64,000 bases of DNA. It comes from Laetmonice hystrix. Lineage: Eukaryota. Shown here piece by piece: positions 4,918-21,832 of this stretch. The notes beneath the pieces are model-generated. The model was not told the DNA's origin, made no database searches, and saw only the letters and a program-made list of their open reading frames with translations. The stretch is from the NCBI GenBank assembly GCA_965235115.1, contig OZ249448.1, positions 18,166,001 to 18,230,000 of the forward strand. Direction: 5' to 3'. The position numbers were made by a program, and so were the translations under genes. Within the stretch, counting starts at the first letter, position 1; every line of letters starts with the position of its first letter.

Positions 4918-5427
4918 AAAGCCATGAAAGGCGTTCACACGTGCTTATGAGTTATGGAATTCCTTATCTCTTATAAGATAAGTGTTCCTTCTGTAAGTAT
5001 AATTCATAAGTATCAAAGTAACTATTCAGTAGTGACTATCCATCACTTAATTTCGAAGTAATGAGAAAATACAAGTGTGTTTGAGACTGTAGAGATATTG
5101 ACATCCTAGCATACTCACTGACATTGAAAAAGTAAATTCAACATATTTCATAATATACAATGCTAATCCAGTGTGGTGGCCAAATTGGTACATAGAATAG
5201 AAGCCACATATATCGTGCCCTTCAGGCGTCCTTTCTACCGAACGATGGAGTTCTCATCTAGTTGTTGGATGCCAATCAGTCTTTAACTACGATTAAATGC
5301 TCGCCGCAAGGGCGACACTTGGACCATAATCCTCACTGAAAGCTTTTACTTGTAACCTTTCTACCGGAAAGGGAGACCAATTGTCTGTGCTTATATTCTA
5401 CACTCGCAGTTCCAACCCGTTCCTGGA

Positions 5428-5461: not shown

Positions 5462-5847
5462 CGAGCTTGTCCTGATCGGCTGAAGAACAAAGCATGTGTA
5501 GTCAAACAGAGGATTCTAGATAAATGGTACTTTTCCAGGTTGAAAAAAACAGATCTATTCTGTGAACGCATTACAGGTTTTTATGGGTAAAAAGGGCATT
5601 TGAAATGGCCTAATAGCCATTGTCGAGGTCCGCGAGTCATGGCTTGTTTACAGCGGTCTAAAACTGTGTTGACGACTATTACGATGATTAATTCTGCAAG
5701 TATGGAAAACAAGGCGCGAAACTCATGGCTGGCCATTTATTAACTATTCGTGTGTGACGCTCCCAAAATAAAACACAGGGCATCACGATCATGGAATGGC
5801 GCCTCTTTGATCCATAAGGAAATTGAAGAATGTGATCTGAATAAATG

Positions 5848-7280
5848 GTGAAAACAGTGGAGCATCACTCGGGTGTAGGTGTAGGTTAACCCCTGTGGTC
5901 TGGTCGAGTTGCCGTCAGTAATTGTGAAAACAGTGGAGCATCACTCGGGTGTAGGTGTAGGTTAACCCCTGTGGTCTGGTCGAGTTGCCGTCAGTAATCG
6001 TGAAAACAGTGGAGCATCACTCGGGTGTAGGTGTAGGTTAACCTCTGTGGTCTGGTCGAGTTGCCGTCAGTAATCGTGAAAACAGTGGAGCATCACTCGG
6101 GTGTAGGTGTAGGTTAACCTCTGTGGTCTGGTCGAGTTGCCGTCAGTAATCGTGAAAACAGTGGAGCATCACTCGGGTGTAGGTGTAGGTTAACCGCTGT
6201 GGTCTGGTCGAGTTGCCGTCAGTAATCGTGAAAACAGTGGAGCATCACTCGGGTGTAGGTGTAGGTTAACCCCTGTGGTCTGGTCGAGTTGCCGTCAGTA
6301 ATCGTGAAAACAGTGGAGCATCACTCGGGTGTAGGTGTAGGTTAACCGCTGTGGTCTGGTCGAGTTGCCGTCAGTAATCGTGAAAACAGTGGAGCATCAC
6401 TCGGGTGTAGGTGTAGGTTAACCCCTGTGGTCTGGTCGAGTTGCCGTCAGTAATCGTGAAAACAGTGGAGCATCACTCGGGTGTAGGTGTAGGTTAACCT
6501 CTGTGGTCTGGTCGAGTTGCCGTCAGTAATCGTGAAAACAGTGGAGCATCACTCGGGGGTAGGTGTAGGTTAACTCCTGTGGTCTGGTCGAGTTGCCGTC
6601 AGTAACAGTGGAGCATCACTCGGGTGTAGGTGTAGGTTAACTCTTGTGGTCTGGTCGAGTTGCCGTCAGTAATCGTGAAAACAGTGGAGCATCACTCGGG
6701 TGTAGGTGTAGGTTAACCTCTGTGGTCTGGTCGAGTTGCCGTCAGTAATCGTGAAAACAGTGGAGCATCACTCGGGTGTAGGTGTAGGTTAACCTCTGTG
6801 GTCTGGTCGAGTTGCCGTCAGTAATCGTGAAAACAGTGGAGCATCACTCGGGTGTAGGTGTAGGTTAACCTCTGTGGTCTGGTCGAGTTGCCGTCAGTAA
6901 TTGTAAAAACAGTGGAGCATCACTCGGGTGTAGGTGTAGGTTAACCCCTGTGGTCTGGTCGAGTTGCCGTCAGTAATTGTGAAAACAGTGGAGCATCACT
7001 CGGGTGTAGGTGTAGGTTAACCTCTGTGGTCTGGTCGAGTTGCCGTCAGTAATCGTGAAAACAGTGGAGCATCACTCGGGTGTAGGTGTAGGTTAACCTC
7101 TGTGGTCTGGTCGAGTTGCCGTCAGTAATCGTGAAAACAGTGGAGCATCACTCGGGTGTAGGTGTAGGTTAACCTCTGTGGTCTGGTCGAGTTGCCGTCA
7201 GTAATCGTGAAAACAGTGGAGCATCACTCGGGTGTAGGTGTAGGTTAACCCCTGTGGTCTGGTCGAGTTGCCGTCAGTAA
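5848..7280. repeat. 76-bp minisatellite, 19 copies
   Basis: The unit GTGAAAACAGTGGAGCATCACTCGGGTGTAGGTGTAGGTTAACCYCTGTGGTCTGGTCGAGTTGCCGTCAGTAATC repeats near-identically. One junction near 6605 has a 9-bp deletion. Confidence 0.98.
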
Positions 7281-16516: not shown

Positions 16517-17764
16517 CTATACAACTTCCATGGTCCCTCCTGCGCCTTGGCCGCGGCCGCTTGTAACCACGTTACGGCGCGATCTGGCCGGATGTTCCGA
16601 GATCAGTCTCCTCTCTGGGCCGTAGTTTTCAAACAAGCCACACAGCGTTTCGGCCGCCACCATCTCTCCAATGTTCATCGAGAGCATACGGATAAGGAAT
16701 ATACCGTCCCGCCTGAGATAGTATTGGGCAAATTTGCCTATTGTTGCCTTGGTGCGATGTGACACGTCAAATGCTCTGAGCTTCCTCTTAACATACTGTA
16801 TCTGCCCAGGCCAGTATATAGAGCGTGCCACCCATTGGAATAAATTCATGAAGGTTGATAGAGCTACAAAAACATACCAAAACCATAAAAGTATAAAAAT
16901 CTTTTCGTTAAAAAGATTGATGGTCAATGCGCACTGCACCACGTAATCATGAAGCCGAGCTTGATGACGAATCTGAAAGTTGCATAAAGTAACCCTCGGG
17001 AAGCGTTCCGATGCCGCCCAGTCTTCTCCATTGAAGAGACGCGCCATGACATAGATACCGTAAAGATGGAACTCGATACCGAGGAACATGTCAAGGAGGA
17101 AGAGCTGCCCGAGGGCGTTGACAGCGTAGAGCAGCTTGATGAAGATATAGGCGACCGTTAGGAAGTTCCCATGCCGCTTACCACCCACAAGGAAGCAGTA
17201 ACGGGCCACGACTTGTTTGAGGCGAATGCAGCAGTTCTGTCGGTAGTCACGTTGGCTCATTAGGTAGCGGTCAATCTGGTTCACAAGGTAGCGGACAGTG
17301 CGGTCTTTGATCTCCGAATACGCCGCCTTGTGGCAGACCGACGCAGCGTCCAGGAGCGAACTGACATCCATGCCAGAACGGACATTCAGCCATCGCCATA
17401 TAAGGCAGGGGACAAAGGACATGAGGGCTTGGCATAGTAAGATTAAAGGCACCCATTGGTAGTAGCTGACCAGTGGTTGGTGCGCCTTCAGATCGTGGTC
17501 ATCTGGTATGCGCCGATCAAACGGTACATAGTATGTGTTGGACACCCAGCATATCGTGTTGGTGTACTGCCGATGAGACTCAGTAAAATGAGCCGGGCAC
17601 CAGCATGAGATAGGGTCGCCCACAAACTGGCGGGTGCTCACAAGGAATGCCAGAATGGTCAGCAGACCGGTCGTGTACTGCCTCGACAACCGGTCAATGA
17701 AATCGTCATCGTGCCTGAATTTGACCTCACGCAAGGAAAGCACAGTACGCAGGAGCCTATCCAT
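16517..17764 (-). CDS. inx: Innexin (invertebrate gap-junction/hemichannel protein), 415 aa, single coding exon
   Basis: All innexin hallmarks occur in order: N-terminal DDDFIDRLSRQYT, TM1, extracellular loop 1 GDPISCWCP...YTNTICW, the YYQWVP signature at TM2, TM3, extracellular loop 2 FPRVTLCNF...QCALTINLFNEKIF and TM4 ILLWFWYVFV. The ATG has a good context (AAGCATGG) and an in-frame TAA 15 nt upstream fixes the start. The specific paralogue cannot be assigned by eye. Confidence 0.98.
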   Translation of the reverse strand: MDRLLRTVLSLREVKFRHDDDFIDRLSRQYTTGLLTILAFLVSTRQFVGDPISCWCPAHFTESHRQYTNTICWVSNTYYVPFDRRIPDDHDLKAHQPLVSYYQWVPLILLCQALMSFVPCLIWRWLNVRSGMDVSSLLDAASVCHKAAYSEIKDRTVRYLVNQIDRYLMSQRDYRQNCCIRLKQVVARYCFLVGGKRHGNFLTVAYIFIKLLYAVNALGQLFLLDMFLGIEFHLYGIYVMARLFNGEDWAASERFPRVTLCNFQIRHQARLHDYVVQCALTINLFNEKIFILLWFWYVFVALSTFMNLFQWVARSIYWPGQIQYVKRKLRAFDVSHRTKATIGKFAQYYLRRDGIFLIRMLSMNIGEMVAAETLCGLFENYGPERRLISEHPARSRRNVVTSGRGQGAGGTMEVV

Positions 17765-17816
17765 GCTTTTTTGACTTTAGTGGTACCTTTGCTTTGTGAG
17801 AAATGGCTTGTCTTAG

Positions 17817-17900
17817 CTGTAAATGGGATCTGCTCTTTTTGAAGATGATCCGCCAATCAGATTTTGATATGACTTAAAATAAGTCACCAATAAGGCTTAC
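17817..17900 (-). other. Predicted 84-nt intron in the innexin 5' UTR
   Basis: The minus strand reads GGA|GTAAGC...CCCATTTACAG|CTAAG, leaving 52 nt of UTR before the ATG. This is a motif-only prediction. Confidence 0.4.
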
Positions 17901-19108
17901 TCCGGATATTGAGAGGAGACTCAGAGGGCGACTGCTGCCTAGTAGATTTTGGCTGGTTTTGTTTGTGTGTGTATGTAAACAGTTGGCCTAGATGACGGTA
18001 GGCCTATGGCACGAGGGAAGAGGGGGTATTGTTGTGTGGGATGCCCCAATGCCTTTTTAAGAAGTGGACCCTTTGCGGCTTAGTTGGATCTTCCTTGCGA
18101 CGTTCACCTACAAATCTCCACCAAATGCAAGCTGTCGTACCGACTTACACGTTCTCATATTGTCGGTCACGCCTTGGTGGAGTTGGCCTCAGCGCCATTT
18201 GTGAAATAAGCTTCAGTTTGAGGGGTTGATGACGTCAGTGATTGTGACGTCGATAGGATATCTTCCGGTGACTGTACACTCAGTGGGATTCCCTGTAAAC
18301 CCACCAGCTCTGCTGAGTCATTTGCGGTGAGCAGCTAATCCTATCGACCTGATGCCTGGGTCTGGCCTGTTTGATGGATGCGATCAAATTTGTCCTGTGT
18401 CAGTATTGATCAAAGTTGGCAAATATAATGTTGGGGACAATGACCGTTCAATACTGTTTGGTCGTGCTCGGTCTAGATCTGTTGTGGTTGACACTGGCCT
18501 ACTATAGTACTGTTCCAATAAACCCTATACCTCTATGTAAACCAAGTCTGTGATTTCGATTAGAGGTGATACGATCCTGTTTTCTTTTTTTCAATCTGAG
18601 TGTTTTGGCCGATATTGAAGATGTCACACACTTGTGCTAGTTGCAGTGTGATCGAATGGAGATACCGTATTGACCGTATCTACCGGTACCCTCACGATCG
18701 CCTGGTCACACCTTATTTGGTATTGTTCCACGCGGTCTGCTCCTCACCAGAGTACGCCTACTCCACGGGATGTACTCCAACTTGGCAACAATAGGTGGCA
18801 CTGGGAGGACTAGAACAATTCAAACGGCAATACTATAAAATACGCTGATGGAAACCAGGAAACGCTGAACTCTGCAGTAATAATACGTCCGACACGTAGT
18901 GGACGATACTCGTATCAATATCAACCAGTTTCTATTCCAATCTACTCTATATTTCTCATAAAGGCAGTGAGAATCTTTCCGTCATTTCCCAGATAAATCG
19001 CTCAAAATCTAAGTGGCCAGCGTATATCCTTATAACTGACTTATCCTTTGGTGTGTGACCTGAAGATACGGACAGGTGACGATACCCTGTCGCTATCTGC
19101 CTCCAGTC

Positions 19109-19342
19109 TCAGCAGCAGATGCAACACATACACATAAGACAATCCTCGGCGCCTCCATCGCCCTCCTTCTCTCGGCGCTCCTGTTCGATAAACTCCAGCG
19201 TCGTGTCGGGTAGTTTGGTGACGGGCGCTCGTCCTCTTATCATTCCAGTTTCATCATCGAAGTTGTCGGCGTCACTGAGAACCCGCATCCAGTAGTCGTC
19301 GTCAAGCTTGTGGGGAGGGACGTCTGGATTCTCAGTCAACAT
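19109..19342 (-). CDS. Putative 77-aa acidic microprotein with C-terminal cysteine cluster (unknown family; loosely CYSTM-like tail)
   Basis: ATG-to-TGA ORF with coding-like codon pattern, 19 of 77 residues D/E and 6 Cys in the last 10 residues. Its ATG is the first one after a good minus-strand splice acceptor (TTTTTCTCTGCCAG, AG at 19464-19463). No homologue recognised. Confidence 0.55.
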   Translation of the reverse strand: MLTENPDVPPHKLDDDYWMRVLSDADNFDDETGMIRGRAPVTKLPDTTLEFIEQERREKEGDGGAEDCLMCMCCICC

Positions 19343-21651
19343 TCGTGTAGATGTGGGGCTCGGCCCGCGGTTTGGCTGGCCGAGGATATTATGATTGAAG
19401 ACGGCAGTTCACTCCTGCCTCGTACCGTGGAAATCTCGCCGCCCTCCTGTCGTTTCGCTGGGCTGGCAGAGAAAAACCCGACTTTATTCCCGCGTTATAT
19501 CAAAGGTCGATCTCACTAGCAGTGGGGGATGTTAGTGTTCCGTTGTAGATTGTTGTTGTGGTGGGCTTTCCCGCCAGAGGAACGCGGGTGGAGAGTCAGA
19601 CGACCTCGGAACGCGACGTAACCAGCGTTCGACGGCAACAGCAGCCGCCAACGCGCAGCACACCCACACAGCGAGAAATGGCGATTCCGATGCACTAGCG
19701 ACACCACGCGATCGATTTGAACACTAGATCAATGAGCTGACACCAGCAGCTCTCAATTTAGCGACTTAAAACGTCCTTAAGACAAACAGCCGGCTTTAAT
19801 AAACGCTCAATCGTCGACATGTATCTGGGCAGTGAAGAAATCCATCGACCATTATCTGATGTACAATCCTCCACACATCAATTAGATCGATCTCTCTGGC
19901 AGATCAGACACCATCAGTTACTGGGTAAACACTACCTGCTTAGGCTTGTCCTCCCACTATTGTACTATGTCATACAACTCCATGAATATTGACGACAACA
20001 TGTAGGCTAGCGTCCGTCACTGTATATAAGGAGGTGATGATAGACGGCTGTCTGAGATCGTACACAATGATGCGGCAGTCTGAGAGAGTAACGGACAAGT
20101 GTCGCCTTGTTTCGCCTTCTCGTTAGAACACCGGTATCTGGCGTCAATATCAGATTGTACTGCTAATGATATTTCAAGAAACCATACCGTGGGTATTGCC
20201 GATATCAGCGATGCCAGCCACGTAGACAAATCCAGACCATGAGCTGAAGTCGCCAAGCGCATCAATATAAAGACCACAGAGCCGTCGATGGCCCGGTCGG
20301 CTGTGTACGCGCGGGGCCTGTATTGCAAGGTCACCGAGCACTAGCAGGCTGCCACCACCGCTCTCCACTCCGTCGTCGCCGCCGCTGATGTCGCTGCCAT
20401 TGCAGTTGCTGACGCTGCTGACTCTGCCGGCGCCCGAGCTGAGATGGCCTGAAGCTGGTGCCGACGCCGCTGGCTACACTGGTTGCAGGTTTCCTCCTTG
20501 GCTTCCGATCCGCCCCCGTTAAACTCGCCGCTCTGGTATCAACTCCACAAATATGGCATACGATCCTTGTCCAACAATAGCCGAGCCAATCTGCCTCACT
20601 CGACGTGCATTGGTAGCTGTTCCCTGGCAGAGCTATCCCTCAGTCGATCACAACGTCCGTCTAAAACACAAACTCTCGATTATCCAAGCCAGCGTACACA
20701 CTCTATCATGCAATCTCCTTGTACAGATAAAACCAGAGGTTGAGAGCCAGAGACAGAACGCGAGCGTAGCACCACCAATGGAATGACCTGTATCTTTCAA
20801 TAGTCCTTCACCGTAATCATACCACGGCAGTCTCCATTAACGTATCCCCACTACGAGGCTGCCTCCCTCCGTTATATAAGTCGGACACCTGGCGCTTATA
20901 GCGCTTTAAACTGACGCTTAAATGTATCCGTGAGAGTGACTAAGGTCCAGGGAGTTACCAAACGGACACTAAGCTAGTGGCGATGACCAGTGGACGTCCA
21001 GGAACAGTCCATACTGCAGCACAACCAGTCAGCATCCAACCACGCTCTTCGACAACCTCTACGTCCACCACCAACAATGGCGATGAGGAACCTGTCGACA
21101 GCAAGTCTCCTTTACCTTGTATGTACATCCACCCCGATGTAGGCGCTCTTACTCCAGTCGTGATGGGATCACAGATAGTATCCCCGCTTAGGTTAAGTCT
21201 GACAGGCTTCCAGGTGTGAAGCCCTACAAGTGGATTGCTGGACAAGGTCAATTAAATTCCCTTCGGGGTTTTCCCTTTCGACGTTACGATCGTGATGTTA
21301 ACAGCAAAGCCTCCAAATCCCCAACGTTTGCACGTAGCTAAGGTTTCGCAGTGACGCGCGCTACTCTTCCACAATGATTGGGGCCGTCTCTTACTAGTGT
21401 CCCTTCAGTCGTACCTGCCCTCGTGTCGCAGATGTCGCGGTCAGTTTCTCCTTCACCTCGACTCCCTGCCCCGTACTAGCCACCACCAGAAATGATGAGA
21501 ACCTTGGCGTATAGTCAGTGGAAGGTCCTACTCGGCCTCCGTGCTGGCGGCGCTGAGCCCGCTAACGTGCCCGACACTGAACCAAGTCTCGAGTCTCTCC
21601 ACCGCCTGGCTGCCTGCCTTCAGTGCACAACAGCGTCAGCCTCCGGCAAAC

Positions 21652-21653
<2 letters not shown>

Positions 21654-21683
<30 letters not shown>
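21654..21683. repeat. (CTG)10
   Basis: Directly visible. Confidence 0.97.
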
Positions 21684-21685
<2 letters not shown>

Positions 21686-21777
21686 GCGCACGCCACCCTT
21701 TACCAGTCGCTTCAGCAGCATCAGCATCAGCATCAGCGATGCTGCCAGCAACATTAGACTGCAACGCCTCTACTACT

Positions 21778-21778
<1 letters not shown>

Positions 21779-21832
<54 letters not shown>
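21779..21832. repeat. (CAG)18
   Basis: Directly visible. It is preceded by (TAC)3. Confidence 0.97.

Follow-up and report, generated by a model that had tools for sequence, protein, structure and literature searches.

A conserved Cys-tailed microprotein encoded upstream of an innexin in Laetmonice hystrix, within a strand-specific ATG desert

A conserved coding sequence upstream of an innexin gene

A short open reading frame (ORF) lies upstream of an innexin gene on the minus strand of Laetmonice hystrix OZ249448.1:18,166,001-18,230,000, a stretch of 64,000 nucleotides (nt) that is called the window here and whose positions are used throughout. The ORF is best explained as encoding a lineage-restricted microprotein of 77-85 amino acids (aa), which would be linked in cis to the innexin through a common leader and would be held at the membrane by a lipid-anchored tail; we give this explanation as a whole a probability of roughly 0.6. 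The microprotein was first noticed from the DNA sequence alone, as an ATG-started ORF of 77 aa that is 25% acidic, ends in a Cys cluster and is co-oriented with the innexin. The quoted peptide is indeed present on the minus strand (Table 1), Asp and Glu account for 19 of its 77 residues (24.7%) and Lys and Arg for 8, and Cys occupies six of the final 10 positions. The innexin is the next same-strand ORF downstream, and the ORF is no N-terminal extension of the innexin, whose ATG at 17764 is preceded, at a distance of 15 nt, by the TAA that had been noted. On the other side, an in-frame TGA (19411-19409) is located 22 codons 5' of the microprotein Met.

Taken by itself the length of the ORF is within chance expectation, because the ORF listing contains many frames of 60-105 aa nearby. 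Its end is more particular, as at least four Cys in the last 12 residues were found, among the window ORFs of at least 30 aa, only in the microprotein and in a poly-Cys reading of a CAG repeat. That the ORF exceeds chance is concluded from its conservation. An exhaustive phmmer search of 1.84 billion cluster representatives returned exactly one match (P0121, E 1.3e-16), which was also the only match of a word-indexed protein search with a two-sequence profile; the same search with the single peptide gave none. A third orthologue was reached via one further member of the 90%-identity cluster of the innexin, from a species represented by two haplotigs (L010 and L011). The homologue search that had been set beforehand as a check thus yielded orthologues in two further species, with the synteny to the innexin kept: the innexins adjoining both orthologous ORFs are 97% identical to that of the window, and the distance between the microprotein stop and the co-oriented innexin is 1344 nt in the window, 2086 nt in L005 (the locus of P0121, where the innexin likewise has 415 aa) and 3044 nt in L010. 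In the 627 Mb (35 contigs) of its own genome the microprotein was found as a single copy, and neither the peptide search nor the profile search detected a second copy or paralogue.

The three microproteins are 51-55% identical, and the nucleotide differences are distributed as in a coding sequence. More explicitly, the identity at codon positions 1, 2 and 3 is about 0.71, 0.72 and 0.32-0.41 for all pairs (Fisher p 1e-5 to 4e-8), and maximum-likelihood (ML) estimates give a nonsynonymous divergence (dN) of 0.32-0.37 with a saturated synonymous divergence (dS). The neutral divergence between these species can be read from the adjoining innexins, which have a third-position identity of 0.49-0.55 and an ML dS of 2-4. 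In a blastn comparison of the window with the other two species the two coding regions alone align, and when 30 kb of the window and 16 kb of L005 are compared in all six frames, conservation is limited to two blocks, the innexin and the microprotein ORF. Indels in the microprotein alignment comprise whole codons throughout, the Met and the stop are conserved, and the three species have no open frame in common other than that of the microprotein, as stops occur in all five others. The two haplotigs of the third species are 97.3% identical overall, and the three differences within the ORF are all synonymous. Frameshifts or neutral divergence, named beforehand as signs that would speak against a protein, were therefore not what the orthologous DNA contained. 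Given the peptide conservation, the codon-position pattern and a frame that stayed intact while neutral sites became saturated, we conclude that the ORF is under coding selection and very probably represents a translated sequence that starts at the annotated Met, in line with the original prediction of an unannotated protein-coding microprotein. Unannotated microproteins are hard to separate from chance ORFs, and in this case a comparative proof of coding selection is at hand.

It is highly improbable that the ORF arose by chance or forms the terminal coding exon of a longer gene that starts upstream, instead of encoding an independent protein. Such a reading could appeal to the numerous chance ORFs of similar length nearby, to the gene calls of a 99%-identical assembly, which skip the ORF, and to an acceptor-like site ending at 19463. 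The latter had been described as a strong splice acceptor with the microprotein ATG as the first ATG behind it. There is indeed no ATG between 19462 and 19342, and the polypyrimidine-AG score of the site is in the top 0.1% of the acceptor-like sites in 14 kb (as judged with a generic consensus matrix), but an equally strong site at the matching position was not found in the two orthologous loci. Against the reading as a whole stand the coding conservation in three species amidst unalignable flanks, the in-frame stops that occur 4-22 codons before the aligned Met in every species, the lack of any similarity between the species in the sequence 5' of the Met, and the lack of a further conserved coding block within 6-8 kb upstream.

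The sequence directly 5' of the ORF contains, besides the in-frame TGA and the acceptor-like site, TATA-like and AATAAA-like strings near 19485-19510. Consensus splice-site scoring detected no conserved donor/acceptor pair by which the two ORFs would be joined. Between 19400 and 19850 the GC content is 0.54-0.58 and the observed/expected ratio of CpG is 1.2-1.3, although that ratio is about 1 nearly everywhere and hence uninformative. Three sequencing runs, all genomic contigs of one sample, matched the stretch; they showed no variants within the ORF, and nearby variants only at 19384, 19412 and 18746.

An ATG desert between and around the two ORFs

On the gene strand, very few ATGs are present in the spacer that separates the microprotein stop from the innexin ATG. 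Compared with dinucleotide shuffles, 5 ATGs were observed against 21.2 expected in the window, 13 against 38.0 in L005 and 8 against 54.1 in L010, and in none of the three cases was any of 500 shuffles as poor in ATG as the actual spacer. The summed count (26 against 113 expected) fits the description of an ATG desert, a local depletion 5' of a main start. Among the 64 trinucleotides, ATG shows the strongest depletion in every one of the spacers when the expectation is taken from a first-order Markov model. The antisense trinucleotide CAT occurs at expectation (21 against 30 in the window spacer), which makes the depletion strand-specific. Within the 64 kb the window spacer is the most ATG-depleted non-repetitive interval of 1300 nt on either strand, and the desert sequence is not repetitive. 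The sole 1300-nt interval with a stronger depletion belongs to a 76-nt satellite at 5844-7280 (19 copies, 96% matches).

The depletion is not confined to the spacer, but encloses the ORF. In L012, a locus of the third species, the microprotein stop is directly followed by 1125 nt without any ATG, and in the window the density at this place is 3 per kb. In L012 the depletion reaches about 4.5 kb upstream of the ORF, such that the eight 1-kb bins 5' of the innexin ATG hold 0-7 ATGs each against 13-20 expected, while the ninth holds 27 against 24. In L005 it reaches about 2.9 kb upstream, and in both loci the 5' edge is sharp. In the window the flank directly 5' of the ORF is free of ATG, and the depletion beyond it is weaker. 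The desert as a whole measures about 2 kb in the window, 5 kb in L005 and 8 kb in L012. Its 3' limit is the innexin start codon; beyond the innexin, as well as far upstream, ATGs occur at normal density. No long ATG desert was found at five innexin loci that lack the microprotein (see below). The start context of the microprotein is weak in all three species (C at -3, T at +4) and that of the innexin is strong (A at -3, G at +4).

At about 2.4 kb 5' of the microprotein ATG the window contains (GCT)n/(CAG)n repeats (21653-21684 and 21779-21832) within a GC-rich island (0.60-0.62). Similar CAG-rich low-complexity DNA is present at the 5' edge of the desert in L005 (about 5040-5110) and in L012 (about 1475-1560), and this GC island may be the promoter region of a long leader.

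One transcription unit or two genes

To our knowledge, selection against upstream AUGs in scanned leaders is the only mechanism by which a single trinucleotide, ATG, is lost from one strand specifically and up to a start codon, and we know of no selection against ATG in 3' untranslated regions (UTRs). Because the depletion is strand-specific and absent from both the downstream DNA and the innexin loci without the ORF, it suggests a leader that is scanned by ribosomes; because the ORF lies within the desert, whose spacer part begins immediately 3' of the microprotein stop, a single transcription unit is favoured. We therefore lean, by a modest degree, towards the ATG-poor region being an mRNA leader and the microprotein the 5' cistron of a bicistronic-type innexin unit. 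A long transcript starting upstream would then carry the microprotein ORF, the AUG-poor spacer and the innexin ORF, and translation of the innexin would depend on ribosomes that re-initiate once they have passed the microprotein stop, or on shorter transcripts beginning within the spacer. What is expected of an upstream cistron, a conserved peptide at a conserved position, is found in all three species (51-55% identity, 1.3-3.0 kb upstream). The link between microprotein and innexin is thus more likely one in cis, via the common AUG-poor leader, and the coexistence of long bicistronic transcripts with shorter, innexin-only ones is plausible.

Several observations do not sit easily with such a unit. 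None of the matching sequencing runs was an RNA run, and exact-sequence look-ups of the three peptides returned genomic contigs or nothing, and no transcript contig. The 3-7 internal ATGs of the microprotein ORF argue against leaky scanning, and an ORF of 77-85 codons is long for efficient re-initiation. In the window the upstream part of the desert is weak (24 ATGs against 37 expected at 19765-21764). The deserts contain 12 poly(A) hexamers against 7.6 expected and hence show no depletion of them; the window spacer contains no AATAAA or ATTAAA, which is not significant because only about 1.1 is expected. Furthermore, the spacers of L005 and L010, otherwise unalignable, share a noncoding element of 54 nt (L005:9857-9908 and L010:7047-7099, 85% identical) with tandem GGAA (ETS-like) and CRE/AP-1-like sites (TGACGTCA in L005, TGAGTCA in L010). 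It is followed on its 3' side by TATAAATA in L005 and ends in a strong donor-like GTGAGT in L010, and as a whole looks like a promoter or first exon of the innexin itself.

The 54-nt element and the poly(A) hexamers would suit two independent neighbouring genes, with a short monocistronic mRNA for the microprotein and a separate innexin promoter within the spacer. A long innexin leader or dispersed innexin starts would in that case explain the desert in the spacer, and the leader of the microprotein the one further upstream. The arrangement would also account for the TATA-like strings 150-230 nt 5' of each microprotein ATG, the variant or canonical poly(A) hexamers 136-185 nt 3' of each microprotein stop, and the CCAAT-like and TATA-like strings about 100 nt before the window innexin ATG. 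We nevertheless consider two separate genes unlikely, if the most serious of the alternatives, as the depletion is strongest right after the microprotein stop, in the stretches of L012 and the window mentioned above, where a two-gene arrangement would place a 3'UTR, and as the 54-nt element is absent from the window. In PMC5580651 the ATG deserts at dispersed promoters are attributed to selection that removes upstream AUGs from alternative leaders, yet the dispersed start-site regions described there span 50-100 nt and not 1.3-3 kb.

The position of the ORF within AUG-poor sequence that reaches as far as the innexin ATG, its weak start context and the location of its invariant stretch, the C-terminal 10 residues beside the conserved stop, would also suit a regulatory upstream ORF whose nascent peptide stalls the ribosome near termination and sets the innexin output without any function as a free protein. 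The constraint, however, spans the whole peptide. The ribosome exit tunnel holds about 30-40 residues, and the strongest internal motif (residues 26-35) would lie outside of it, being at least 42 residues away from the C-terminus. Considering also that 77-85 codons with an overall dN/dS far below 1 fit a functional protein, and that the innexin ATG is 1.3-3 kb away, a stalling peptide seems improbable.

The original prediction went further and suggested the microprotein as a regulatory partner of the innexin channel. This proposal found no support. A complex prediction for innexin and microprotein (score 0.08, mark 0.34) provides no evidence for or against binding, and a physical interaction must be regarded as doubtful, because adjacency that is conserved within one narrow clade is weak evidence. 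A more far-reaching version of the bicistronic reading, in which one mRNA with an AUG-free spacer of 1.3-3 kb allows re-initiation at the innexin ATG and the multiply palmitoylated microprotein is a dedicated small subunit of the channel, is equally speculative. The two proteins would in that case be produced at a fixed ratio and in the same place, and the microprotein would act on newly made innexin, in trafficking, plaque assembly or gating. If true, the accessory factors of gap junctions would include a new class, encoded in the leader of the channel's own gene.

Relation to known bicistronic loci and ATG deserts

The protein family is new. Known bicistronic loci with an upstream cistron have a similar layout, but on a different scale. 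Human polycistronic transcripts provide an example of upstream cistrons that encode conserved small proteins (PMC13303939). In the bicistronic loci of green algae, ORF1 has a median length of about 291 nt, its start context is weak and few AUGs precede ORF2, a scarcity that is likewise put down to selection against upstream AUGs (PMC11892635); the present locus is alike in its short ORF1 (231-255 nt) with a weak start. With animal and algal bicistronic mRNAs in general it shares the strong start of ORF2, the small number of AUGs before ORF2 and the joint conservation of the two ORFs. It deviates from them in the distance between the ORFs (1.3-3 kb versus tens to hundreds of nt), in the 3-7 ATGs inside ORF1 and in an AUG-poor region that continues for kilobases upstream of ORF1, and the likeness concerns a locus known from genomic sequence alone. 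The ATG deserts of Lee et al. 2005, as summarised in PMC5580651, are likewise local depletions 5' of a main start, but comprise regions of 50-100 nt, compared to about 2, 5 and 8 kb in the window, L005 and L012; moreover, the present desert is strictly strand-specific and encloses a conserved coding ORF, which sets it apart from the deserts in that summary. A full-text literature search recovered no paper that links innexins with bicistronic, upstream-ORF or microprotein terms.

The setting is unusual in that a strand-specific ATG desert of kilobase scale joins the microprotein to the innexin start codon. If both ORFs share an mRNA, the locus would be a bicistronic gene of an animal in which an exceptionally long spacer without AUGs separates the cistrons. 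Strand-wise ATG depletion moreover offers a simple sequence-only test for cistrons embedded in leaders, applicable to genomes that lack RNA data.

Protein features and the Cys tail

The conserved parts of the microprotein are an N-terminal P-x-x-P...L-DDY, the core DNFD(D/E)ETG(M/L)I-K/R-G and the C-terminal CLxCMCCICC-COOH. The hydrophobic Cys tail measures 10 residues and is directly preceded by G-G-A-E-D; because of this short length and the Gly and acidic residues before it, it is too short for a helix that spans the membrane. The N-terminus does not resemble a signal peptide. AlphaFold2 models built on alignments of two and three sequences are of low confidence (predicted local distance difference test, about 58) and contain helices near residues 15-26 and 46-60, a short hairpin after the former and an unstructured tail. 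A Foldseek comparison of the model with the PDB gave no matches, and hmmscan with the three orthologues against Pfam-A gave no family at E up to 10. A profile search of the PDB returned the C-lobe of centrin and LSm5, both non-significant (E about 0.8) and mutually inconsistent. Look-ups in a protein atlas, all below 0.85 and to be taken as leads only, pointed to a hypothetical cluster of giant viruses and to a cluster named after CYSTM (0.76-0.78). A literature search with the tail motif found unrelated PETase names alone.

The tail had been likened to those of CYSTM proteins, Rab GTPases and cysteine-string protein, but membership of these families did not hold with respect to the Pfam domains, the tail length, or the number and position of the Cys residues. 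CYSTM (PF12734) was not matched by any of the three orthologues at E up to 10, and its membrane-spanning segment takes about 20 hydrophobic residues. The microprotein does share the small size and the Cys-rich C-terminus with CYSTM proteins; its Cys-rich hydrophobic stretch of 10 residues is not a membrane-spanning module, however, and its N-terminal part is acidic and helical instead of rich in Pro, Gly and Tyr. For a Rab GTPase with a CC or CXC tail there is no GTPase domain in the Pfam search, and the protein comprises only 77 aa. Cysteine-string protein (DNAJC5) has a J domain and at least 12 central Cys, whereas the microprotein has no DnaJ match and six Cys, all of them C-terminal. As for prenylation at a CaaX box, each of the three species has C-I-C-C as its C-terminal tetrapeptide, a non-canonical sequence in which the second 'a' is Cys. 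An EF-hand pair was rejected as well, there being no Pfam EF-hand match and the aligned loop being one residue short and ending in Ala or Pro; canonical loops comprise 12 residues, with Asp at position 1 and Glu at position 12.

A terminal Cys cluster interleaved with Leu, Met and Ile is most simply a multiply palmitoylated anchor. By analogy we see an even chance that the Cys tail is multiply S-acylated and tethers the acidic part of the protein to the cytoplasmic face of a membrane. Peripheral proteins that are S-acylated at their tail, such as yeast Yck2/Yck3 and the Ras/Rho proteins with palmitoylated CC tails, similarly combine a hydrophilic body with a short terminal cluster of Cys and hydrophobic residues, and like the microprotein have neither signal peptide nor membrane helix. 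The microprotein differs from them in that it contains no kinase or GTPase domain and has no sequence homology to them, and its acylation is putative.

The main alternative is that the Cys tail constitutes a metal-binding cluster, within a small soluble acidic protein that binds metal or acts in redox reactions and perhaps includes a degenerate domain resembling an EF-hand pair. Six Cys within ten residues do recall metallothionein-like clusters, a point that also weighs against a lipid anchor, and the centrin C-lobe match is colinear, with FDDETG-x-I aligned to FDDDETGKI of centrin. The E-value of that match is, however, equal to that of the unrelated LSm5, and neither Pfam nor Foldseek lends it support. 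Given in addition that the aligned loop lacks an acidic residue at position 12, and that hydrophobic residues (Leu, Met, Ile) interspersed among Cys at the very C-terminus are a usual feature of acylated tails, we hold metal binding to be a rather unlikely function of the tail.

Table 1. Features of the microprotein-innexin locus (window positions unless a locus is named)
Feature	Position	Strand or orientation	Description	Basis
Microprotein coding sequence	19109..19342	-	77 codons plus TGA stop at 19109-19111	ORF listing, orthologues
C-terminal tail codons, CLMCMCCICC	19112..19141	-	Invariant CLxCMCCICC; putative S-acylation or metal-binding cluster	Three species
Core motif codons, DNFD(D/E)ETG(M/L)I	19238..19267	-	Residues 26-35	Three-species alignment
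5' flank	19343..19820	-	478 nt, zero ATG on the gene strand	ATG map, acceptor score, sequence
Spacer	17765..19108	-	1344 nt from microprotein stop to innexin ATG; ATG desert	5 ATG versus 21 expected
Innexin coding sequence	16517..17764	-	415 aa, intronless	Pfam PF00876, E 1.7e-96
Orthologue P0121	L005:8001-8249	co-oriented with innexin	82 aa, ending ...EDCLACMCCICC	phmmer
Third-species orthologue	L010:4699-4956	co-oriented with innexin	85 aa, ending ...ADECLTCMCCICC	Via innexin cluster

The innexin and the distribution of the microprotein

Among named proteins, the best relatives of the window innexin come from annelids (Lamellibrachia, Helobdella, Hirudo and Capitella). A maximum-likelihood tree groups the three innexins that adjoin the microprotein in a tight clade (100/100), which is nested within an orthogroup (98/99) that does not include the closest paralogue in the same genome (62% identical, contig 7). 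The five other innexin loci of the orthogroup (L002, L003, L004, L008 and L009), whose innexins are 63-71% identical, offer 1.3-8 kb of DNA upstream of the innexin. Neither tblastn nor a hidden Markov model of the three sequences, run on six-frame translations, nor a scan for Cys-rich ORF ends found the microprotein near any of these innexins. The known carriers are therewith three species of one tight clade, a restriction that counts against the cis-linked, lipid-anchored microprotein favoured here. Judged from these sequences, the microprotein is an orphan family known only from one narrow clade, and it defines this new family, which has an unusual, invariant C-terminus with six Cys. The family may extend further than protein libraries show, since the gene calls of the 99%-identical assembly do not include the ORF.

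Some minor observations concern the innexins and their surroundings. The ENA sample ERZ26222911 (P0001, P0005) contains a 99%-identical copy of the window innexin together with a 67%-identical innexin; since the closest paralogue of the own genome is only 62% identical, the sample may contain more than one related animal. The microprotein ORF is missing from the gene calls of this sample. Downstream of the innexin, around 470 nt directly 3' of the stop are conserved between L005:11584-12056 and L010:9246-9724, presumably as 3'UTR, and an element of 197 nt about 3 kb downstream is 88% identical between L005:14496-14691 and L010:12615-12808; both are unalignable to the window. Neither these two stretches nor any other part of the window, L005 or L010 gave an Rfam match. 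Finally, the genome G000 contains at least 32 innexin-like matches, including tandem clusters, on contigs C8 (16.40-16.84 Mb), C30 (2.57-2.59 Mb), C2 and C11; several of these consist of two exons, and a few are interrupted by a stop.

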